Below are positions 6,001 to 42,900 of a stretch of DNA of 64,000 bases, piece after piece. The translations under genes were made by a program, and so were the position numbers. Source of the stretch: Macrostomum hystrix (lineage: Eukaryota > Animalia > Platyhelminthes); the NCBI GenBank assembly GCA_950097015.1, contig CATNEN010000024.1, forward strand, positions 4,960,001-5,024,000, read 5' to 3'. Numbering within the stretch: position 1 is the first letter of the stretch; each line of letters opens with the position of its first letter. The notes below the pieces were generated by a model that made no database searches, had not been told where the DNA came from, and saw nothing but the letters and a program-made list of their open reading frames with translations.

Positions 6001-8628
6001 TGAAATCTAAAGCACTCCCAAACCCGAATTTCGCCTGTTTCGCTAACGCCAATGCCTCGCTAATGTCCTCATTATTTATCAGGGGTCACAATCCTGCTGT
6101 CACTAACAGTGTTTCTAATGATGGTCGCTGAGTCCATGCCGCCAACATCAGACGCTGTGCCACTAATAGGTGAGCTTCGCTGCTTCACCGCGTTCAAGGC
6201 AATCGACGATTCCGTGGCGATGCATCCATGAATTATAGTTAAAGAAAAATACGGACAAGTGAGAATCTACGAGCAGCACAGTGTACATTCAATTCGAGAA
6301 GGGTCCCTCGTAGCAAAATGTACTTGGTTTGGTTGTTAAAAGGTTAAAAGCTGTGTTATAAATAGCAACACTATGTACATGGCTTGGGATTGGAAGGGTT
6401 TAGAGCGGAGTTATAAATGGCAACACAATGTACATGGCTTGGGCTTAGAAGTGTTTAGAGCGGGGTTATAAATAGCAACACAATGTACATGGCTTGAGCT
6501 TAGAAGGGTTTAGAGCGGAGTTATAAATAGCAACACAATGTACATGGCTTGGGCGTGGAATGGTTGAGAGCTGGGTTATAAATAGCAACACAATGTACAT
6601 GGCTTGGGCGTGGAATGGCTGAGAGCTGGGTTATAAATAGCAACACAATGTACATGGTTTGGGTGTGGGTTTAGTGAGGAGATGGCAGTTGCTATTCAGA
6701 GGAGAAAAATAATCTCGTTGCTGATGTATGTTCGTGTGGAATTTAAGCGGTAGACAACGTGCGAATGCATCTCGCAAATTTCCAGCAAATAACTGAATTT
6801 GAAAATCTATAAATGATTAAATCAACAATACCAATAATCGACAAGGTAAGATCAACGACGCCAGGTAGCCCATCTACCCCCCTAAGCCTAACTCTAACCG
6901 CACGAAGTCAATCTTTCTATTTGCAATCTGGCATCATTGGACTGGCTACTAACTATCGAATGGCGAGCGCTGCTTAATTTGATATTAACAAATTTACAGT
7001 ATGCTGCTAAACTCAAGTTAATTATCTTCTCTGACTTTTATAGTTGCGATTTCAAGTGACGACTTTTATGATATTATCCACTTTAAAAAAGCAAAATAGA
7101 AAAACTAAGTGACAGGTATAAAAACTTCACAGCCTGAAATCTCAGCCTACAAAACATAAAATTACAGGCATGTACTTCTCCTGCACCATGGTCATGTGCA
7201 GCCTGTCCGTGGTCTTCACTGTCATCGTGCTCAACTATCATCATAGAGACGCGGAGTCACACCCCGTGCCTAACTGGGTACAGTACACAGCACATTGATT
7301 TAAACTTATAGATATATTCTTTGTTTAAATTTATACGCTAGAAGTAAAATGTGTGCCATCATTTCTGGTCTTGGGTAGAAATTTTGGTGCATGTAGCGGC
7401 CTGCCCAGTCCATGGACTGAACAACTTGGCTAGGTTTAATTTGTATTTGTATTCTATCTCTATTTTGTTTTACTGCTGCCAATCAGGTTTGAACACTTGC
7501 TAAATGACAACGTTTTTTTAAAAGGTTTAGGAGGCCTTCTCATTTAAAAACACAATACAGAGAGTGATAATTTTTTACATTTTCCACATTAAAATTGAGA
7601 TCGTTTTTTATAGGAAGCAGATCCAGAGCTCAACTTATGATATAACTTACCTAACATGCTGCTGCAACGAAATTTTACGAAGCTATATTCGGATACTTTT
7701 TCTTGGTTTTCCCCGCAAAAATTCTTCTAAAGTAAGTCATTATTCCCTTTAATAGGCCGAATATAAATAAGGTTACCAGAGAAATAAAAAGCAAAATTGT
7801 GAAACCGATGCTTTCACAAATAAAGCTTGACAGAAATAGATGAAGCTATAAAAAAGAGAACTATAATATCAAAACACGAGCCTTGGATCCTCTATAATCA
7901 AATAGAGTCACTAAATTTGTGCAAAATGTGAAAATGCAAATCTCAGTAAAACCAGCCTCCTGAACTTTTTCTAAGAAATGTAGTCCATCCTTCAACTCCT
8001 ACTGGTCCTTAGCATCAACATCCACTTTGCGTCTCTCCTTCAGGTGAAAAAGTTCATTTGCACCTACCTGGCTAACATCTTGTGCATGAAGAATCATCAC
8101 AGAGACGAAGAGAAGGAGCCTGTGTACCTGCGCCGTCGAAAGAACGCCTCCTTCCGCGCGTCTTCGTTTCGCGAGACGGCCAACGCCAACGTGGAACTGA
8201 AGGAGCGCTCATCGAAATCGTTGCTGGCCAACGTGCTCGACTTAGAAGACGACATCAGGACAGCCGTCGGAGTTGGCGGCGTCGGCGCCAGCAGCGGCGT
8301 CGGCGGTGGGGGCGGCGTATATTCGCCTCCGGCCTATCAGAATGTTATGGGCAGCAGCATGGACGGTGGCGGCGGCGCCATCGCTGGAGGAGTTGGCGGC
8401 GCCTGCGCCTCGAACTGCAGCACCCGAAACGATTTGGCTGCGGTCGTTCACGAGCTGCGCGTCATCACACAGAAGATCGCAGACGATACTGCGGATGGCG
8501 AGATCAGCAGCGAGTGGAAATTCGCCGCTCGAGTTGTAGACAGACTCTGCCTGATCATCTTCTCCTGTTTTACAGTCATTTCCACCTGCGCCATTCTGTT
8601 CTCCGCGCCGGACGTGTTTAAGGGCTGA
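1..8628 (+). CDS. Nicotinic acetylcholine receptor alpha subunit, alpha7-like (5'-partial, spliced, two alternative exon pairs)
   Basis: Exons read by hand with GT/AG ends and matching phases: <1..101 ([10 protein letters not shown], loop A), 852..1168 (Cys-loop [15 protein letters not shown], loop B GSWSYDG), 2677..2871 or 4205..4399 (vicinal CC loop C + M1), 5247..5333 or 6083..6169 (M2), 7168..7277 (M3), 8044..8628 (cytoplasmic loop, [15 protein letters not shown]4, TGA). Lengths 195/87/110 nt match recalled CHRNA7 exons 7/8/9. Confidence 0.95.
255..785. repeat. Intronic 21-nt minisatellite (GGGATTTGTAGATAAGTGAAT)n
   Basis: Visible tandem array; edges approximate. Confidence 0.93.
1278..1678. 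repeat. Intronic 14-nt minisatellite (CCAGGATTCTGATC)n
   Basis: About 28 near-perfect tandem copies. Confidence 0.97.
2113..2654. repeat. Intronic 18-nt minisatellite (AGGAAATCCCATAGTTAC)n
   Basis: About 30 copies, ending about 22 nt before the exon 7a acceptor. Confidence 0.97.
2677..2871 (+). CDS. nAChR alternative exon 7a (loop C + M1 + intracellular ring)
   Basis: 195 nt, ttgcag|GC...G|gtatga, phase 1/1; encodes [20 protein letters not shown]...[10 protein letters not shown]. Confidence 0.88.
3330..3872. repeat. Intronic 26-nt minisatellite (GGGATTCCCTTTTGAGATTTCCTCTC)n
   Basis: Degenerate at the 5' end, homogeneous from about 3629; lies between exons 7a and 7b. Confidence 0.92.
4205..4399 (+). 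CDS. nAChR alternative exon 7b (loop C + M1 + intracellular ring)
   Basis: 195 nt, ctgcag|GC...G|gtacgt, phase 1/1; encodes [20 protein letters not shown]...[10 protein letters not shown]; paralogous to 2677..2871. Confidence 0.9.
4618..5185. repeat. Intronic 26-30-nt minisatellite (GAGTGAGTGAGTAGCATCTCCCATAGACNNA)n
   Basis: Tandem array between exons 7b and 8a. Confidence 0.93.
5247..5333 (+). CDS. nAChR alternative exon 8a (pore helix M2 and M2-M3 loop)
   Basis: 87 nt, atccag|GC...G|gtaaga; [29 protein letters not shown]. Too short for the ORF track; read directly from sequence. Confidence 0.85.
6083..6169 (+). CDS. nAChR alternative exon 8b (pore helix M2 and M2-M3 loop)
   Basis: 87 nt, ttatcag|GG...G|gtgagc; [29 protein letters not shown], the canonical alpha7-like M2. 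Confidence 0.9.
6355..6665. repeat. Intronic 55-nt tandem repeat (ATAAATAGCAACACAATGTACATGGCTTGGG...)
   Basis: Five to six diverged copies at 55-nt spacing. Confidence 0.85.
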
Positions 8629-30228: not shown

Positions 30229-31074
30229 ATAATGATATACAGGTGTACTAGCTAGCACATGGATGTTCAGATGTACAAATTCAATATGCTGCGTGCACTT
30301 TTCAGCAAGCAAGGGCTACATTGACTGAGAAAGCCCATACTGATCGTAACTGTGTGTTTCGCAGAAATTCAAACAAAAGTATTCCTTCCCACGTACTCGA
30401 CAGCTGAGCATATTACACTAAAGAAGTGACTCTAGCGTCACGTGCTATTACAGTACGTCTCTAAAATACCTACGGGAGGTCATTGCATTTTATCAGAGCC
30501 GCACCATTGTACTATCATGGATCCGTTTAAAAGTACTTTAGTACGCATCGGGTTGCCATTACCAACTCCCACGACTCCCTCAACAAGTGTGTAATAGTGC
30601 AAGCGGCTCACAAGAGTGTGCTGTATTAAAAAAATTCTCAGTTCGATAAGAGGTCGGGGAGGTTGGTTGTTAAGCAAAAACCGCAGCCAACCAGCAAAGA
30701 ATACTTTCAACACCAAAAGCCTATCTGAATTGCGCCAGTGAATTTGAATATGGGGAGACTACAATGTCGGAAAGTTGAAAGTTCAGAGATAAGTACAATT
30801 TTGCTTTATGGAATCCTCTCTGTATAAATCGCGACTTCCCATGGCGAAATTCCACCATACCATGCTAGAAATTTTGGACTTGAAATATAGTACAGGCAAG
30901 GGCATACAAACTTTATAATAGTACATACTGTGCAGAGAATAATTTGAGACAAAACTAGCTAGACACAAGCTGCTTTCTGCGGGACAAAACTAGGTAAAAA
31001 AAACCTGCTTGTGCGAATTCCATTCCACGGGTTGTGAAAGCATTTTAGCTGCAGCATTATTTATGAATTGCATC

Positions 31075-31370
31075 TTGTAGGATGAGAGTTGCGATTGTGT
31101 GAAATCTCACCCTCTGCATCTTGCAGTATGAGAGTTGCATTGGTGTGAAATCTCACCCTCTGCATCTGGCAGTATGAGAGTTGCATTTGTGTGAAATCTC
31201 ACCCTCTGCATCTGGCAGCATGAGAGTTGCATTGGTGTGAAATCTCACCCTCTGCATCTGGCAGTATGAAAGTTGCATTGGTGTGAAATCTCACCCTCTG
31301 CATCTTGTAGGATGAGAGTTGCATTGGTGTGAAATCTCACCCTCTGCATCTGGCAGTATGAGAGTTGAAT
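31075..31370. repeat. 46-nt tandem repeat (GAGAGTTGCATTGGTGTGAAATCTCACCCTCTGCATCTGGCAGTAT)n
   Basis: About 6 copies. Confidence 0.9.
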
Positions 31371-31837
31371 ATGTTCGCCCTCGAGTGGCCACGGGACCCA
31401 GAGCAGGACTGCAGACGTTCTCCAAGTTTACTTTACTTTTAAATTAAAAAAACAGTAATCAGCCAAAATATGTAAATTTAAATTTTAACAATTTTTAACG
31501 TAGTTTATTTAAACTGCATAAAATGCAACGATTTTTATGCGAAATTTGAGACAATAAACTACAGAATAAACCATATTTACAGTTAGAAACAAAACGCTCG
31601 CACAGGAAAGAATAAGAGTATAGAGATCAAACTATTTTAAAAAGCTAGAAAATATAAAATGCTAATTTGTGCGCTGCGGAAGGACCATAATTTGTGACAG
31701 ATGGGGAACACTGCAATTTTATGGCACTGCTAATCCGCTTTTAGCAAACTACGAGTATCAATAGCTAATAACTATAATGTGAGAAAGATAACTTAAGGCA
31801 CACCAACAACTGCCAGTTGACTCACAAATACAACAAG

Positions 31838-33655
31838 TGACAGACACACAGGCACAGTCTGATAACTGGTTGGAGTGTGACAGACACACAGAGACAGTCT
31901 GATCACTGGTTGGAGTGTGACAGACACACAGGCACAGTCTGATAACTGGTTGGAGTGTGACAGACACACAGAGACAGTCTGATCACTGGTTGGAGTGTGA
32001 CAGACACACAGTCACAGTCTGATAACTGGTTGGAGTGTGACAGACACACAGGCACAGTCTGATCACTGGTTGGAGTGTGACAGACACACAGGCACAGTCT
32101 GATAACTGGTTGGAGTGTGACAGACACACAGGCACAGTCTGATCACTGGTTGGAGTGTGACAGACACACAGGCACAGTCTGATAACTGGTTGGAGTGTGA
32201 CAGACACACAGGCACAGTCTGATCACTGGTTGGAGTGTGACAGACACACAGGCACAGTCTGATAACTGGTTGGAGTGTGACAGACACACAGGCACAGTCT
32301 GATCACTGGTTGGAGTGTGACAGACACACAGGCACAGTCTGATCACTGGTTGGAGTGTGACAGACACACAGGCACAGTCTGATCACTGGTTGGAGTGTGA
32401 CAGACACACAGGCACAGTCTGATCACTGGTTGGAGTGTGACAGACACACAGACACAGTCTGATAACTGGTTGGAGTGTGACAGACGCACAGGCACAGTCT
32501 GATCACTGGTTGGAGTGTGACAGACACACAGGCACAGTCTGATAACTGGTTGGAGTGACAGACACACAGGCACAGTCTGATCACTGGTTGGAGTGTGACA
32601 GACACACAGGCACAGTCTGATCACTGGTTGGAGTGTGACAGACACACAGGCACAGTCTGATCACTGGTTGGAGTGTGACAGACACACAGGCACAGTCTGA
32701 TCACTGGTTGGAGTGTGACAGACACACAGACACAGTCTGATAACTGGTTGGAGTGTGACAGACGCACAGGCACAGTCTGATCACTGGTTGGAGTGTGACA
32801 GACACACAGGCACAGTCTGATAACTGGTTGGAGTGACAGACACACAGGCACAGTCTGATCACTGGTTGGAGTGTGACAGACACACAGGCACAGTCTGATC
32901 ACTGGTTGGAGTGTGACAGACACACAGGCACAGTCTGATCACTGGTTGGAGTGTGACAGACACACAGGCACAGTCTGATAACTGGTTGGAGTGTGACAGA
33001 CGCACAGGCACAGTCTGATAACTGGTTGGAGTGTGACAGACACACAGGCACAGTCTGATCACTGGTTGGAGTGTGACAGACACACAGGCACAGTCTGATA
33101 ACTGGTTGGAGTGACAGACACACAGGCACAGTCTGATCACTGGTTGGAGTGTGACAGACACACAGGCACAGTCTGATCACTGGTTGGAGTGTGACAGACA
33201 CACAGGCACAGTCTGATCACTGGTTGGAGTGTGACAGACACACAGGCACAGTCTGATCACTGGTTGGAGTGTGACAGACACACAGACACAGTCTGATAAC
33301 TGGTTGGAGTGTGACAGACGCACAGGCACAGTCTGATAACTGGTTGGAGTGTGACAGACACACAGGCACAGTCTGATCACTGGTTGGAGTGTGACAGACA
33401 CACAGGCACAGTCTGATCACTGGTTGGAGTGTGACAGACACACAGGCACAGTCTGATCACTGGTTGGAGTGTGACAGACACACAGGCACAGTCTGATCAC
33501 TGGTTGGAGTGTGACAGACACACAGGCACAGTCTGATAACAGGTTGGAGTGTGACAGACGCACAGGCACAGTCTGATCACTGGTTGGAGTGTGACAGACG
33601 CACAGGCACAGTCTGATAACAGGTTCGAGTGTGACAGACACACAGGAACAGTCTG
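31838..33655. repeat. 40-nt satellite (GTGACAGACACACAGGCACAGTCTGATAACTGGTTGGAGT)n
   Basis: About 45 copies with GATAAC/GATCAC variants and occasional 38-nt units. Confidence 0.97.
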
Positions 33656-34332
33656 AGAACAATAAAATATTTGTGAAGCATAAAAGACATTGTTATTACG
33701 TAAGGCAAGATAAAAATATAGTTGACTAATATATCAATAAGAATAGTTTCATATACCTAAGTTGCTGCAAAGTACGCTAATAACTAAAAAAAATGGAAGA
33801 GAAACGCTACTCAACAGTCATGATCAGTCTAACACAGAATAATCGAACAATTACAAAAAGGCAAACTATTCATAAATAGTCTTCCTATTCTCAAAGAAGT
33901 GCTCACGTCCTAACGCTAATAAAACTGCACTTGCGGCTTATTGAATTTTAGCCACAGCCGCTAATTGTGACGCATATTTTGAGTCCATTAAGCTGACGAC
34001 TCAAACTAAAAAATTACTGACAAGGGGAGAAGAACTTTTGGAGTTTAGTAGCAATTACTAGCTGAAGTTAAAATGACATCTGCGCACAATGGGTCCAAAA
34101 AATAAAATTCTGTTTTGGGAAGTTCAGTTGGACAGCTGGATTGGCTAAGGCTTGACTAGCTATTGAAAATGTCATCGATTAGCTTCTCAAATTACAATAG
34201 ATTAGCGATCCCTAATGGGGATAGATTAGCAATCCATTATGGGGATAGATTAGCAATCCATTATGGGGATAGATTAGCAATCCATTATGGGGATAGATTA
34301 GCAATCCACATGAGCAATCACATTGTCATATG

Positions 34333-37300
34333 TCAGCGCCTGGCAGAGTGCCGCTTAGAAGGACTGCTGCCACCGCCACTGCCACCGCCACTGCGGCCGC
34401 CACAACCGTCGCCGTCATCAGCTGGCTGCTGCTGCTGCTGCTGCTGTTGTTGTCTGATGGAGCGGCGCAGCTCAAGGCCGCCTGGGCGGAAGCTACCAGA
34501 TGACTGCGAGTCGCCAGTAGACGGAGTGAATCTAGCCAGCTGCGACAGTCGGCCGCTACTGCCACCGCCGCCGTCATCAACTGGGACGCTGGAACTTTTA
34601 AAATCGGCTAGCGCCCGGCGAAGCTTCTGCGCGTCGTCCAAAGTCATGCCGGGACCGTTAGGCCAGCTGGCGATGAGGCTGGCGGTCCTCATCCTGGCTA
34701 GCTGTGCTGTCTGGCTGCAGCCGAGCTTTGCAAAGTGCCCGGAGTAGCGCGTTAAACCAAGCATTTCTAGGACATGGCCGACGTCAGCTGGGTAGAGCTG
34801 CCTCGGCTGCTGCTGCTGCTGACCGTCCTCTAGATCTTCGAGACTGACTCCAACTGTCTCCGTGCTGAGAGTGTCCAATCGCGGCCGCTGCGACGGAGGC
34901 GGAGCCGCAGCCAGGTTGTCCGATTCCTGAGGGACAGAGCAAGAAAACAGTGAGCAAGACCAAAAGTGAAGCATCAGGGCAGGTGAGAGCCCAACCTGAT
35001 GCATCAGGGCAGGTGAAAGCCCAACCTGATGCATCAGGGCAGGTGACAGCCCAACCTGAATCATCAAAACAGGTGAGAGCCCAACCTGAAGCATCATAAC
35101 AGGTGAGAGCCCACCCTGAAGCATCAAAACAGGTGAGAGCCCCAACCTGATGCATCAGGGCAGGTGAGAGCCCAACCTGAAGCATCAGGGCAGGTGAGAG
35201 CCTAACCTGAAGCATCAGGGCAGGTGAGAACCTAACCTGAAGAATCAGGGCAGGTGAGAGCCTAACCTGAAGAATCAGGGCAGGTGAGAACCTAACCTGA
35301 AGAATCAGGTAGGAGAGAAAGACTACAAAGACATCAGCGGCACTTACCTCTTGATTGGCAGTAGACAGTAGAATGGTCGGCTGACTAGACAGCAACGGAC
35401 GCGTGCTATCGATAGTTACAGTTGCAGTAGCAGCTGTAGCAGCAGCAGCAGCAGCAGCAGCAGTCGGTATTATCGGCAGACTGCTTAACGACGGCGACGC
35501 TATCGGCTGCGAGAAAGAAAGCCGTTGCAATGGTGACTGAGAATGCTGCGGCTGTGACAGCGGCTGTGATAGCGGCTGCGACAGCGGCTGCGACAGCGGC
35601 TGCGACAGCGGCTGTGATAGCGGCTGCGACAGCAAAAAGTCACTTAGCTGTCGCGGGCCATTGCCAGTGTAAGACGAATTCGATAGACTGCGCAACAGCT
35701 GCTGAATGGTGTCAAAGCGAGTTAGCGATGGTTGCTGGGTGAGCTGGGGCACATTCGGCTGCTGTGCGGAAAGGAACAACGGCGCGGAGAGCATCGGATC
35801 ACCCAGAAGTACGTTGCCGCTGCTTCCAGACGAGGAGCCCTGACTGCCTGTCGGCGGTTGGTTGGCCGTCACAGCGAGTATGTCCTGCTGCTGAGGCATG
35901 CAGGCCGTGCTTTTTAGCGTAGCCAGCATGCTCTGCACCAGATGGAATGTTAGGAAATTCAGGGTCGGAGACTGGCTACGGACGCGAAATTCGTTAGGAT
36001 CGTCAGCCATGTAGCACATTGTGTCGAATTGGAACGAATTAATTGCTGTCTGAGGCAGCTGCTGTTGCTGTTGCCGCTGCTGCTGTTGCTGTTCCTGCTG
36101 CTGCTGTTGCTGCGGTTGCTGCTGTTGCTGGTCCTTCTGAGGAGCCGGCAGAGGCGGGGTGTGAGCAGGCGTGCCGTCTTCAACGGAGCATCGCTTAACT
36201 CCCCTGAGTTTCGTGCTCTGGTGTCGCGTTTTCTCCAGATGTGGGCACCTGTATGGAGATTGAGAGCGGGACGGGTGCACTGGGTGACTGGAAGTCTTAT
36301 GACTGATGCACCTGGATGACTGGAAGTCTAATGACTGATGCACCTGGCTGACTGGCAGTCTAATGACTGATGCACCTGGCTGACTGGCAGTCTAATGACT
36401 GATGCACCTGGCTGACTGGCAGTCTAATGACTGATGCACCTGGCTGACTGGCAGTCTAATGACTGATGCACCTGGCTGACTGGCAGTCTAATGACTGATG
36501 CACCTGGCTGACTGGCAGTCTAATGACTGATGCACCTGGCTGACTGGCAGTCTAATGACTGATGCACCTGGCTGACTGGCAGTCTAATGACTGATGCACT
36601 GAATACAGAGTACATTAGAATAGAAATGAAACCTTACCCTATTGGAACCTATGAATGAAAGAAACCTTAAGAAACCTACCTGCCCAACTTTCTGGTGGGT
36701 GAGCTGAAGCGCAGGGGAGTTGTGTTGCTCAATGACAGATTTTTTCCATGGAGTGAGCAGTCTGTAGCTTCAAACACTGGGCATTCAGAGGCCCTGAGTG
36801 ATAGCCCCTTTAATTACCCTGGCGGACAGCCGAACTGATCCTCGGTGAATAGTTCGTAAACCTCAGCTGTCAGATCGCGATACGGCGACGCTACGGCGCG
36901 CACGCGAAAGGCGAATCGCCCGGCGACGGTCCAATTGGAAGTGCTAGGCGGAGTGGACTCCAGGCAGACTGTGACACAGATGCCGTGTTTACTATTCTTA
37001 TCCACATGCGAGCTGGGGCAGGTGATGGTCACAGGTACGTTCACCTCTGCCAGCGGCGCGTTTCCAGACGGCGGTGCGCAGTCTAGCGTCCCCAGGACGC
37101 AGTCACCGGCGCAGGTGTACACAGCATCTGGCAAGGTTATTAGCAGCGCCGAGCCGTAATGCCCCGGGTCGCCCTGCTGCGAATAGACAGAGCCTATGTT
37201 CGATGGCAGCCGGCGATTGCCGCTCCTCGAGTTGCTGCCGTCGTAGATGCCGCGGGCGTGGGCCTCGGCGCATTGGGGACACTCGAGCAGACTGTTCTGC

Positions 37301-38917
37301 TTGCCGAATACGAAGATGTTGAAAACCAGGCGGTAGTGCAACTGCCGATTGTAGCGGAATCTGAAACGGATACGAGAATATTGAAGGTCACTTTTCTAAC
37401 CTCAAATTCTGTTAACTGTCAACTTGAGAATCGCTAACCTACTAATCCCCTTCTTGAGAATCGCTATCCTACTAATCCCCTTCTTGAGAATCGCTATCCT
37501 ACTAATCCCCTTCTTGAGAATCGCTATCCTACTAATCCCCTACCTGAGAATCGCTATCCTACTAATCCCCTTCTTGAGAATCGCTATCCTACTAATCCCC
37601 TTCTTGAGAATCGCTATCCTACTAATCCCCTACCTGAGAATCGCTATCCTACTAATCCCCTTCTTGAGAATCGCTATCCTACTAATCCCCTTCTTGAGAA
37701 TCGCTATCCTACTAATCCCCTACCTGAGAATCGCTATCCTACTAATCCCCTTCTTGAGAATCGCTATCCTACTAATCTCCTACCTGAGAATCGCTATCCT
37801 ACTAATCCCCTTCTTGAGAATCGCTATCCTACTAATCCCCTTCTTGAGAATCGCTATCCTACTAATCCCCTACCTGAGAATCGCTAACCTACTAATCCCC
37901 TTCTTGAGAATCGCTATCCTACTAATCCCCTTCTTGAGAATCGCTATCCTACTAATCCCCTACCTGAGAATCGCTATCCTACTAATCCCCTTCTTGAGAA
38001 TCGCTATCCTACTAATCTCCTACCTGAGAATCGCTATCCTACTAATCCCCTTCTTGAGAATCGCTATCCTACTAATCCCCTTCTTGAGAATCGCTATCCT
38101 ACTAATCCCCTACCTGAGAATCGCTAACCTACTAATCCCCTTCTTGAGAATCGCTATCCTACTAATCCCCTTCTTGAGAATCGCTATCCTACTAATCCCC
38201 TTCTTGAGAATCGCTATCCTACTAATCCCCTTCTTGAGAATCGCTATCCTACTAATCCCCTACCTGAGAATCGCTATCCTACTAATCCCCTTCTTGAGAA
38301 TCGCTATCCTACTAATCCCCTACCTGAGAATCGCTAACCTACTAATCCCCTTCTTGAGAATCGCTATCCTACTAATCCCCTTCTTGAGAATCACCATCTT
38401 ATTACTCGCAATTCCGTGCCTGAGAAATCACCTACTGAATAATAATAAATGTTGAATGTTTAGGAGGCCATACTTTGCCTATAGGATAATCATTAATCCT
38501 CGCCTACTTGACAATCGTCTACCTCAATTGTCAATCGATTTGATTGAGTCGATTCTCAATCGGCGTAGAAAATCATATCCTAGGCCTATGAGAATCAATA
38601 TAATTTTGAATCAAGTTTTCAACGCACTTAGCCTTCAGCAACACCTGGTCCATTGGTTTCAACCAGAGTGTTGGCAGAACCTCCGGGTGCTTCAAGATCT
38701 GGCTGTGGTTGCTGGGCCGGGGGCTGGCGATGGCTTCGGTGAGTTTAGCTTTCTCCTCAGCTGACCAGCCAACAAAGCAGTGCGGCACGCAGCCGCTCTT
38801 AGCGAATCTCTGGTGGAGGGTGCTGCCTAAAACCTCGCGGTTCTGAATATCGACGGAGAATTCCGACTCGCCACCGGTGGTTTCAGTTTGAAAGTACTTT
38901 TGATAGCAGGCGGCCAT
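34333..38917 (-). CDS. Divergent p53/p63/p73-family protein (DNA-binding domain + putative oligomerisation domain + Q/S-rich linker + SAM domain)
   Basis: complement(join(34333..34926,35348..36248,36818..37341,38645..38917)), 763 aa, phases 0/2/0 consistent; the first donor GTGTTG is weak. GRFAFRVRAVASPYRD aligns without gaps to p53 GRNSFEVRVCACPGRD; CPSSHVDKNSKHGICVTVCLE to [21 protein letters not shown]; CPQC to CPHH; GGESEFSVDI and FAKSGC to the start of the domain and loop L1. The last exon has SAM-like VGHVLEMLGLTRYSGHF...GMTLDDAQKLRRAL. Confidence 0.75.
34965..35310. repeat. Intronic 30-nt minisatellite (AGGTGAGAGCCCAACCTGAAGCATCAGGGC)n
   Basis: p53-like intron 3. Confidence 0.92.
36295..36600. 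repeat. Intronic 32-nt minisatellite (GACTGATGCACCTGGCTGACTGGCAGTCTAAT)n
   Basis: p53-like intron 2, about 9 copies. Confidence 0.95.
37424..38395. repeat. Intronic 30-nt minisatellite (GAGAATCGCTATCCTACTAATCCCCTTCTT)n
   Basis: p53-like intron 1, about 32 copies; produces the spurious 343-aa ORF. Confidence 0.97.
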
Positions 38918-39909: not shown

Positions 39910-42900
39910 CTACAGTTCAAACAGAGCCGCCTTGGGCACCTGGCCGCACAGAGCGTCCCGAATCTGGTCCAGACAGAGCATCTGCATTCCCAGCCGGGTC
40001 TGGCGCGTGTGCGTCCCGAAATGCGGCGTCACCCAGACGTTCAGCCGGCCATTGGCCAGCAGCGGATGCTCAGCCGGCAGCGGCTCCGGCTCCGTGACGT
40101 CCAGCCCGGCGCCTGCGATGATGCCAGCCTCCAGAGCAGCCAGCAGGGCCTCAGTGTCGACGATGCCGCCGCGGGCCACGTTGATAAGCGCCGCCGTCGG
40201 CCGCATGAGTTGCAGGGTGTCGGCGTTGATCAGGTGCCAAGTTTCCGGCCCCAGCGGGCAGGCGGTGACAACGAAGTCACACCGCGGCAACAGGTCAGCC
40301 AGGCTGACGCAATACTCCGCGCCACCCAACTGCACCTCCAGCTGGGGCTCCGCCCGATGACGCTGATGATAGAATAAGCGACAGCCGAAGCCCAGGCCGC
40401 ATCGTCTGGCGATGCAGCGGCCGATGGCACCGAGGCCGACAATGCCGACGCTCGCGCCGGCCAGGTCGCTGCCCAGAGGCACAACGGAGCCGCTCCAATT
40501 GGCTGGGCCAACGGCATGGATCTGCTCGAACACCTGGCGCTGCCGTCTAGCCACATTCAGCATGAGCAGCAGGGCAACGTCGGCGGTGGCCTCGGCGATG
40601 ACTACCGGCGTGTGCGTCACTAGGATGCCACGCGATCTGCAGAATATTCACCATTATTTGCCAACATTTCTACTCAGAGTAGCAAAAACTTACACTTAAA
40701 CTTCGTCTTACACTGCCGTTTCTCTCTCTTACACCTGCCTTTTCTCTCTCTCTCTTACACTTCACCGTTTCTCTCTCTCTTTCTCCTCGCCGTTTCTCTC
40801 TTCTCTCTCTCACCTCGCCGTTTCTCTCTCTCTTTCACCTCGCCGTCTCTCTCTCTCTCTCTCTCTTAGACCTCGCTATCTCTCTCTCTTAGACCTCGCC
40901 GTCTCCCTCTCTCTCTCTCTTAGACCTCGCCGTCTCTCTCTCTCCTTCACCTCACCGTTTCTCTCTCTCTCTCTTAGACCTCGCAGTCTCTCTCTCTCTC
41001 CCTCTCTTAGACCTCGCCGTTTCGGCCGCGTCGGCGGCTTCATCGGCGGCGTCGTCGGCGGCTTCGTCGGCGGCTTCAACGGTGGCTTCAACGACAGCTT
41101 CTACGGCGACTTCAACGGCGTCCTCTCTATTGCCAGGCTCTGGAAGGCCAGTTTGTCCAACATCAGGAGGGCTTTCCCGGCCGCGACCATTTGGGTGGTA
41201 CAGGTGGTCTGCCCCCGGATTCGCCTGCTGTCCTGAAGAGTAACTGCGACAAGACAAACCAGCTACTGAGCAGCCACCGGTCCAACAACTTGATATCGCT
41301 GGACACCTCGGAGCTAATATTTCGAAGGGACCGGATCACTCTGGAGCGAAAATCGGCTGATGAGGCATTCGCTGCCACCCTGAAGGCAGTGAACGAACCG
41401 GCAAAAAACTGAGCGGCTCACTCACCGAACACTTACACCGGACGAACAGAAACTACTGGAACGGGGCCAGTCCTTTGTAGTGGCTCCCCGCTACACCTCG
41501 GCGGCAGCAATGTCGTCAGGCATAAGCGACTTCAGCAAGCGTCTGGCCGTTTCGGCAGTTTGAGGCTACAAGCGTGAATTACCAAGGAAAGAAGGACCAA
41601 CCCCGCCGAACCGTCCACTAGCCAGCATCAACCCACTCCATCTCAGGCCCGACACACAAGCCATGCTACTGGAGCTGGAAGAAATCAAGAACGGCATCCA
41701 CGACTGCAAGAACATTCCAAACATCAGCGAAGCCGAGGCAAGAGCACTGCGGGACCTTCGCGCCGACAAGTTCATCGTCATCAAGCCGGCCGACAAGGGC
41801 AGTCAGCTGGTTATAATCGACCGACAGAACTATGTGCGCGAATGCCGGCGGCAACTGGAGGACCCACTCTTCTATCAAGACCCAAGCGGTTGATGAAGCG
41901 CCGATCAACCGCTTCACGGCCCAATGGATTCGAGCAGTCTTCCAGTCACTCCTAGACCGCAGGATAATCGACAGGCGCCAATTCAACGCCTTCAACCCGA
42001 AGGAGGAGTTCCGGACCCGGTGTTTCTACGTCCTGCCAAAAATTCACAAACCGGTCGAGACGTGCCCACTAGACAGTATCCCTCCAGGTCGGCCCATCAT
42101 ATCGGACGTGGACAGCGTGTCCTACGCCATCGGCCGCTTCATCGATAGCTATCTACAACCAATAGTGATCAAGTTTACTCAATCAATAGTGATTGAGTAA
42201 GATAGCCTGACGCTAGCTTACTCACTTTGCTCAAGCTGAACCTGGAGCGTAACGATGTGGGTTCGAAGGCAAATTTTTCCTTCAGTGAAATGCACTGCGA
42301 TGGGCAAGTCATTTGCACCCAGCTATAGCAATATTTACATGGGCTACTGGGAGCGTAGAGGCTTGGAGTCCAGTCCCATCAAACCCGCTCTGTGGCTACG
42401 ATACATCGACGACATTTTCGGCGTCTGGCGGGGAACAAAGGACGAACTCATCCGCTTCCACCAACATCTGAACGAACTGGATCCAAACATCAAACTTCAG
42501 CTGAGTTATAGCGACACCAAAGTGAATTTTCTGGGCATAAAAGTCTTCTGGGACCGCGACAAAGACAAGAAGAGGCTAGGCACGAAGGTGTACTTCAAGC
42601 CCACTGATAGCCGAGCCCTCATCCACCGCGAATCATTCCATCCTAAGCGAACATTCAAAGCCCGACGCTGTTCCCGGATGGCCGACTTCGATCAGTGTTA
42701 CAGCAGACGATTCTTGCGCGACACTAAATATGAAGTGCTGACGGAACTGAGATTCTACCCAACCAAGCAATGGGAATTCGACTTTCTGCCCTGAAACGCG
42801 AGTCGACTCTGCAAGGCTTGCCGAGCACACGCGAGGTTCACCTCGGTCTGTCCAGGATCCGCGGCCACGACAGTTAAGTTAGTCATCCGCCAAAGAGTCA

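Follow-up and report, generated by a model that had tools for sequence, protein, structure and literature searches.

In a 64,000-nucleotide stretch of DNA from the flatworm Macrostomum hystrix (GenBank assembly GCA_950097015.1, contig CATNEN010000024.1, forward-strand positions 4,960,001 to 5,024,000; we call the whole stretch the window and use its own position numbers), the minus-strand locus 38917-34333 is a spliced, expressed gene with four coding exons and a product of 775 amino acids. We conclude that it is very probably a functional, expressed and highly divergent transcription-factor gene of the p53/p63/p73 family in a Macrostomum-type flatworm. Its architecture, which consists of a DNA-binding domain, a patch resembling a nuclear localization signal (NLS), Q-rich linkers and a SAM domain, is p63/p73-like. 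The data demonstrate the structure of exons 2-4, the expression of the gene, the predicted fold, the SAM domain and the conservation of the key motifs. An earlier note on this DNA, made from the sequence alone, had claimed a p53-family DNA-binding domain here, and fold, motifs and domain architecture all support that claim.

Overall, the window appears eukaryotic in character. The closest relatives of the gene come from a second species of the genus. A phmmer search with exon 2 against 1.84 billion protein representatives found two relevant proteins, both from Macrostomum lignano. The first is PAA59970.1 (P0002; A0A267EEJ4), which has 698 amino acids compared with 775 here. It is 65% identical to the exon 2 product (E 7.6e-68), 62% identical over the DNA-binding domain and 54% identical overall, and all key motifs are common to both proteins. 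Databases name it only "hypothetical protein" or "SAM domain-containing protein", with no p53-family name. The second and weaker match, P0006 (E 7e-4), is represented more fully by P0009, which is 25% identical to P0002 over the domain. The p53-like proteins of M. lignano thus fall into at least two groups of paralogs that have diverged strongly, and a word-indexed protein search with the paralog found only M. lignano copies. We refer to P0002 as the ortholog and to P0009 as the paralog.

Fold and family membership of the DNA-binding domain

The fold was modelled with AlphaFold2 (AF2) on residues 1-300 of the ortholog as a proxy, with an alignment of Macrostomum sequences only. When this model was compared with the PDB using Foldseek, 268 matches had E<=1e-3, the best at 1.6e-8, and all 50 of the 50 matches listed are p53, p63, p73 or the p53 homolog of the annelid Alvinella. 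Re-alignment to p53 with VIA gave Z 10.0 and a root-mean-square deviation of 4.1 Å for 171 of 193 residues, and placed model residues 2-272 on p53 residues 95-289. The structural match to p53 by which the earlier note had suggested checking its claim is therefore present, for the ortholog model. A wide VIA search, independent of Foldseek and covering 48,161 representatives, ranked p53 and the Caenorhabditis elegans protein CEP-1 in its top four places (Z 8.8-9.2). These were followed by Grhl2 (Z 8.4) and CP2c (7.7), while generic immunoglobulin (Ig) folds reached at most 8.1 with far fewer residues aligned. By shape in the Atlas, P53 clusters also came first, with template-modelling (TM) scores of 0.50-0.53, compared with 0.44 for Grainyhead/CP2. 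The predicted structure contains a p53-type Ig-like beta-sandwich with L2 and L3 loops and a loop-sheet-helix surface.

The earlier note had also claimed long insertions in L1 and L2. These are recovered as two low-confidence stretches of the model, 26-81 and 136-169. About 25 extra residues, predicted to be partly helical, lie between S2 and S3, and about 20 in L2.

Sequence comparisons point to the same family. We built a family profile from the window exons, P0002 and P0009 and searched it with HMMER against all PDB sequences. It matched only p63/p53 DNA-binding domains, weakly (E 0.16-0.75). The alignment includes two gap-free blocks: in L3, ...ITCPSSHVDKNSK.GICVTVCLE is aligned to p63, and in S10-H2, GRFAFRVRAVASP.RD is aligned to p63 GRRCFEARICACPGRD. 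When language-model features of P0002 residues 1-300 were compared, P53 clusters came first (0.92, with 210 of 256 features in common), ahead of CP2/Grainyhead clusters at 0.80-0.83. The paralog has a weak Pfam P53 match (15.9-18 bits, E 0.003-0.012, against a cut-off of 27), which is its sole Pfam match. A word-indexed protein search found nothing with exon 2, within its length window, and only a low-complexity bacterial match with exon 3. The profile check proposed in the earlier note is answered in part: the family profile matches p63/p53 and nothing else in the PDB, and neither the window exon products nor the ortholog match Pfam P53. The curated P53 profile (PF00870) has a gathering score of 27 bits, which none of the window exon products, the ortholog or the paralog reaches, so family membership rests on remote-homology evidence. 

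It is important to consider several results that weigh against membership in the p53 family. The overall confidence of the DNA-binding-domain model is low: its mean predicted local distance difference test (pLDDT) value is 51.8 and its predicted TM score (pTM) is 0.53, with strands at 65-83 and both insertion stretches below 50, and the modelled sequence was that of an ortholog with 62-65% identity rather than the window's spliced protein. The lead of p53 over Grainyhead (Z 8.4) in the wide structural search is less than one Z unit. Pfam, run on each exon product alone at E<=10, gave no P53, SAM or tetramer match, nor was P53 matched by residues 1-300 of the ortholog at the same limit; the paralog, at 18 bits, stays below the curated 27. 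Single sequences (the exon products and the paralog domain) found no relevant PDB chain with phmmer, and a profile of L2 only, searched against the PDB, found no p53, its only matches being chance CxxC matches such as a phage primase. In the language-model search, window exon 2 alone was unrecognised, with best scores of 0.84 to unnamed clusters. Finally, exon 3, including the segment that the earlier note proposed for oligomerisation, has no match to Pfam P53_tetramer (PF07710) or to the PDB.

These results bear on the possibility that the gene belongs to the CP2/Grainyhead family, whose members have a p53-like fold and whose LSF/CP2 branch has a downstream SAM-like domain, and is not p53 proper. 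We consider this improbable. It draws on the wide structural search, where the Grhl2 DNA-binding domain (Z 8.4) and CP2c/LSF (7.7) come near p53 (9.2), on the CP2 clusters found in the feature search and by shape, and on domain order, since a DNA-binding domain followed by a SAM domain also fits LSF. However, no member has a Pfam CP2 (PF04516) match at E<=10, and the only Pfam match of the paralog is P53, not CP2. The family profile selects p63/p53 chains exclusively, although the PDB contains Grhl and CP2 structures. The domain has two motifs specific to p53, C-x-S-S-C/H in L3 and R-x-x-A-x-P-x-R-D in H2, and conserved Cys/His motifs occupy the p53 zinc positions; Grh/CP2 domains are not known to bind zinc. 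The number of residues aligned also differs, at 171-180 for p53 and 142 for Grhl2. In structural terms p53 is only slightly ahead of Grainyhead/CP2; it is mainly sequence that speaks against CP2. Taken together, the fold and the sequence motifs are good evidence that the domain is a true but very divergent member of the p53 family.

Zinc-ligand motifs, DNA contacts and the C-terminal half

We assigned residues using the HMMER alignment to p63 and the standard correspondence between p63 and p53. Both proposed zinc-ligand motifs occur on the minus strand where the earlier note had placed them: CPQC at 37281-37270 (residues 124-127) and CPSSH at 37020-37006 (residues 211-215), the latter followed by VDKNSKHG. 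That note had read the four p53 ligands as having become Cys, Cys, Cys and His. For the L3 half, HMMER pairs TCPSSH with p63 MCNSSC, so that C238 is kept and C242 is replaced by His. For the L2 half, in which C176 would be kept and H179 replaced by Cys, the assignment is positional. In p53, R175-C176-P177-H178-H179 is located before and within helix H1. Here, E-C-P-Q-C (residues 123-127) is found 6-8 residues past strand S4, at the start of a predicted helix (125-132). By position only, it is therefore plausible that R175 corresponds to E and H179 to C here.

Neither the ortholog (CAQC, TCPSSH) nor the 25%-identical paralog (CTVC, TCMTTH) has lost any of the four candidate ligands, which suggests that the site is under constraint. 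One helical turn further on, in CAEAH, a fifth histidine is also conserved and is an additional candidate ligand. Judging from these motifs, zinc would be bound through residues of L2 and L3. A single zinc ion might tie L2 to L3 via Cys124 and Cys127 in L2 and Cys211 and His215 in L3. The ligand set would in that case still be Cys3His, but its histidine would come from L3 and not from L2.

The S10-H2 loop-sheet-helix motif, FRVRAVASPYRDL (36909-36871, minus strand; residues 248-260), is aligned by HMMER to p63 FEARICACPGRDR and is identical in M. lignano. In the HMMER alignment, S241, R273, A276, P278, R280 and D281 of p53 are retained, and the replacements are G245>K, R248>K, R249>H, C275>V, C277>S and R282>L. 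The DNA-contact positions thus have R at R273 and R280, and K at R248. Among the substitutions listed in the earlier note, those in L3 and toward the C-terminal end of the domain are confirmed by this alignment, whereas R175>E is a matter of position. The note had also equated an AKS motif with K120. AKS is present at 38803-38795 (minus strand) and possibly corresponds to p53 A119-K120-S121 in L1, but the equivalence is uncertain because the motif belongs to the low-confidence stretch 26-81. It reads NKS in the ortholog, with K and S kept, and NAS in the paralog, with K lost.

The altered DNA specificity that the earlier note had predicted is unsupported. The retention of the R273, A276, R280 and S241 equivalents, together with a conservative K for R248, argues for a p53-like half-site as the probable target. 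We infer both DNA binding and the target sequence from these residues. Helix H2, with the R280 equivalent, and S10, with the R273 equivalent, would contact the major groove and the backbone, and L3, with K in place of R248, would reach the minor groove.

C-terminal to the DNA-binding domain, exon 3 is mostly low in complexity and poorly conserved relative to M. lignano. It encodes, all on the minus strand, a basic NLS-like patch KLRGVKR (36211-36191), a poly-Q or Q-rich tract of 24 residues (36130-36059) and a coding repeat (LSQP)x7 (35632-35549). In the ortholog, the repeat and the long poly-Q tract are each either absent or considerably reduced. Exon 3 also contains the segment EFRVRSQS...ATLK (35992-35912, minus strand; residues 364-390), for which the earlier note had proposed a role in oligomerisation. 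This segment is in the same transcript and the same reading frame as the SAM-like stretch, and it has a plausible strand-turn-helix pattern. Nevertheless, the proposal is unsupported, given the lack of a Pfam or PDB match and the poor conservation: the segment is barely conserved relative to M. lignano, and alignment with the ortholog and paralog is uninformative. Oligomerisation through it is a guess based on its letters.

The claim of a SAM domain is confirmed by an AF2 model of exon 4 and by the structural matches of that model. The model, made for the window's own 34839-34552 (minus strand), has five helices and a pLDDT of 73, with 76-90 in the core; the core of the five-helix bundle spans 34782-34591 (minus strand) according to AF2 and Foldseek. 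All 50 of the top 50 Foldseek matches are SAM domains, with the p63 SAM at ranks 7 and 27. TM scores by target were 0.6-0.8, and E values were 0.1 and above, which is weak for so small a domain. Pfam SAM matches were likewise weak and below cut-offs (E 0.096 for the window and 6e-4 for the ortholog), and the PDB profile matches of the region, also weak, are Eph and SHIP2 SAM domains. The predicted protein therefore has the C-terminal SAM domain that is characteristic of the p63/p73 type.

The domain begins at residue 2, and the M. lignano model starts likewise, which leaves no room for a transactivation domain in front of it. This raises the possibility that the gene encodes a p53-family protein that is no longer a classical activator. 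It could be a deltaN-like repressor or competitor for the paralog's sites, or a scaffold whose DNA specificity has drifted. The ATG lies at model residue 1 with a stop codon just upstream, in M. lignano as here nothing precedes the domain, and M. lignano has a second divergent paralog; in addition, structural hotspot positions differ by alignment and inference (R175E, G245K, R249H, R282L and C277S). On the other hand, the positions contacting bases and backbone (R273, A276, R280 and S241) are kept, and the Q-rich tracts could serve as activation regions. Moreover, schistosome p53-1 and p53-2 are functional without recognisable transactivation, tetramerisation or SAM domains (PMC9478680). We regard loss of the activator role as unlikely, while giving it clearly more weight than a CP2/Grainyhead identity. 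In a functional p53-family transcription factor of the kind we favour, activation might come from the Q-rich linkers and protein contacts from the SAM domain.

Gene structure, expression and selection

The minus strand has several long open frames from 38917 to 34333, as the earlier note had claimed, with repeat-rich DNA between them. Translation of the spliced exons gives an intact frame of 775 codons with no stop at any joint. The transcript evidence consists of contigs from four public runs of one study, which were compared with 34200-37430 and differ from the window at 0-2 positions. These contigs skip parts of the window at GT..AG boundaries and therefore represent spliced RNA.

Coding exon 1 (38917-38628, minus strand, as are all exons and introns here) encodes residues 1-96 plus 2 nucleotides. 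Its start codon is the ATG at 38917, which is closely preceded by an in-frame TAA (38923-38921), and it encodes the N-terminal part of the DNA-binding domain, namely strand S1, the long L1, S2, the helical insertion and S3 (LPTLWL). Intron 1 (38627-37361) is mostly minisatellite. Coding exon 2 (37360-36818; residues 97-278) encodes S4, L2/H1, S5-S10, L3 and helix H2. In contigs of the four runs, exon 2 is covered at 36816-37360 and joined to 36246, with a GT..AG joint at its end (36818) in all four. Only two differences from the window occur in this exon, at 37189 and 36937, both at third codon positions that leave serine codons unchanged. Intron 2 (36817-36249) has GT..AG boundaries and its joint is seen in each of the four runs. 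Coding exon 3 (36248-35348; residues 278-578) is defined by transcript contigs and translation. It is followed by intron 3 (35347-34927; GT..AG, phase 0), whose joint is again present in four runs, and by coding exon 4 (34926-34333; residues 579-775 and the stop codon at 34335-34333), across which contigs span 34461-34925.

The first junction had been placed at 38645>37341 in the earlier note, and the transcripts contradict this. In all four runs, the contig match ends exactly at 37360 (tttcag|ATTCCG), with 88-327 further letters upstream, so the acceptor at 37341 is wrong. With the acceptor at 37360, the donor has to be in phase 2, as 38628 (GCTAA|GTGCGT) is. The junction 38628>37360 yields ...PMDQVLLKAKFRYNRQLHYRL..., which is residue-for-residue collinear with ...PMDEVSLVASFRYDRRFQYRM... 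in the M. lignano protein, and the first intron of the M. lignano gene is at the same codon and phase (AG|GTATTC ... CCGCAG|T). The donor of exon 1 is thus probably at 38628, and the gene model predicts that the transcript continues past this position as ATTCCGCTAC. The junction proposed earlier would omit 12 residues; it preserves both frames, so the rest of the earlier hand alignment is unaffected.

A few further observations concern the 5' end and the contigs. Two motifs are found upstream of the ATG: TATAAAT at 38970-38964 and ttttccag, which resembles an acceptor, at 38940-38933. One contig has 327 letters upstream of 37360 and, if collinear, would extend to about 38954. Contig depth runs to thousands at 36036-36143 and 34740-34847, compared with about 8 elsewhere, with many false joints. 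This depth is due to CAG/CTG-type low-complexity sequence that is common to many transcripts, and not to the expression of this gene.

Introns 1 and 3, two of the three, are common to the M. lignano ortholog. Intron 2 is absent there, where the codons for GCPAGCSH are contiguous (M. lignano locus ~8550-8560). Intron 2 is thus a lineage-specific intron gain or loss. The upstream neighbour is also conserved. Its last exon, encoding a 2-hydroxyacid dehydrogenase, is at 39910-40620 (minus strand) and is 78% identical to M. lignano PAA55773.1, and a 2-hydroxyacid dehydrogenase is upstream of the p53-like gene in M. lignano too, in the same order and on the same strand. The public gene models of M. 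lignano appear to be chimeric. In A0A1I8HBP9, the 2-hydroxyacid dehydrogenase and the p53-like gene are joined into one model. The entries for the paralog bear the names "START domain-containing" and "SH2 domain-containing", although a Pfam search detects neither of these domains, and an internal stretch of P0009 is missing from P0006.

For the DNA-binding domain compared with that of M. lignano, the Nei-Gojobori method gives 0.29 nonsynonymous substitutions per site (dN) and about 1.2 synonymous substitutions per site (dS), the latter near saturation, and a dN/dS of about 0.25. The gene is under purifying selection. Conservation is highest in L2/H1, L3 and S10-H2, the blocks that make up the DNA-binding face of p53.

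Tandem repeats, identified with Tandem Repeats Finder (TRF), are abundant in and around the gene. Intron 1 has 32 copies of a 30-nucleotide unit (37423-38392), intron 2 has 10 copies of a 32-nucleotide unit that fill most of the intron (36276-36599), and intron 3 has 11 copies of a 30-nucleotide unit (34967-35309). Just beyond the stop codon is a 24-nucleotide array of 4.7 copies (34197-34308). The units of the three intronic minisatellites and of this array differ from each other. Downstream of the gene are large tandem arrays at 31750-33700 and 31060-31430, with units of about 80 and about 46 nucleotides, which are visible as many overlapping repeated minus-strand open reading frames.

Minisatellites that fill all three introns, low-complexity repeats in the coding sequence and the failure of every curated profile to reach its threshold are what might be expected if the locus were a decaying or non-functional copy that resembles p53 motifs by chance. 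Against this stand the 775-codon frame that is intact over four exons, transcripts correctly spliced in four runs, a syntenic ortholog with the dN/dS given above, and fold matches far beyond chance. We assign this explanation almost no probability.

Comparison with known p53-family proteins

To vertebrate p63 and p73 (TP63, TP73), the modelled domain is similar in structure and distant in sequence: VIA gives Z 9.1-9.6 to their DNA-binding domains, with ~12-21% identity over structure-aligned residues. The order of DNA-binding domain, linker and SAM domain is the same, and the p63 SAM is among the structural matches of the window's SAM. The window gene differs from p63/p73 in that it has no transactivation domain, no detectable tetramerisation domain and a P53 profile score below threshold. 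It also has insertions of about 25 residues after L1/S2 and in L2, as well as long poly-Q and repeat linkers. R175, G245, R249, R282, C275 and C277 of p53 appear to be replaced. The proposed zinc set is Cys-Cys/Cys-His, as opposed to Cys-His/Cys-Cys in p63/p73. In p53, the zinc tetrad that bridges L2 and L3 consists of Cys176, His179, Cys238 and Cys242; this canonical site, like the DNA contacts R248, R273 and R280, is described as strictly conserved between annelids and humans (PMC8901663).

Within the same phylum, the p53 homologs closest in kind are Smed-p53 and Schistosoma mansoni p53-1 and p53-2. The two schistosome genes have a Pfam-recognisable P53 domain and no transactivation, tetramerisation or SAM domain (PMC9478680). 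The absence of a tetramerisation domain from the schistosome genes shows that this domain is not universal in the family. The window gene resembles them in being without a recognisable transactivation or tetramerisation domain. In other respects the situation is reversed: the schistosome genes match the P53 profile and have no SAM domain, whereas the window gene has a SAM domain and is below the P53 threshold. None of 19 free-living flatworms was reported to have a p53-2 ortholog (PMC9478680); M. lignano nevertheless has its two divergent paralog groups.

There is a precedent for divergence in which membership is recognised mainly by fold and a few motifs. C. elegans CEP-1 (PDB 1T4W) aligns to our model with VIA Z 9.2 over 169-173 residues. 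Its structure reportedly has canonical Cys/His/Cys/Cys ligands and its own C-terminal OD-SAM module.

Our literature search turned up no description of a p53 or p63 gene from Macrostomum. A preprint on a study that includes Macrostomum reports that p53-type motifs are conserved as markers of the epidermal lineage in flatworms (10.1101/2024.09.03.611027). Such motifs fit a conserved binding specificity for at least one paralog, which one being unspecified.

We tentatively propose, with somewhat less than even confidence, that macrostomids carry at least two ancient and very divergent p53 paralogs that escape standard domain models or are only just detected by them. In both, the structural zinc would be held by a Cys-Cys/Cys-His tetrad in which the histidine has moved from L2 to L3, and the paralog in the window would have kept an ancestral p63-like SAM domain that is absent from schistosome p53-1 and p53-2.

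If this is true, the view that free-living flatworms have a single canonical p53, with a duplicate found only in parasites, would need revisiting, and the family would offer a natural experiment on the rewiring of the p53 zinc site and hotspot residues with the fold kept. Should ligands swapped between L2 and L3, replacement of five hotspots (R175, G245, R248, R249 and R282) and a preserved fold indeed occur together, the domain would be informative for p53 folding and stability. The gene adds a cryptic SAM-bearing family member, alongside a second paralog, in a free-living genus in which experiments are practicable (M. lignano), and it indicates that Pfam-based p53 censuses in flatworms can overlook real members. 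It also bears on the ancestral role of p53 in flatworms and on the timing of its duplication, a question raised previously (PMC9478680).

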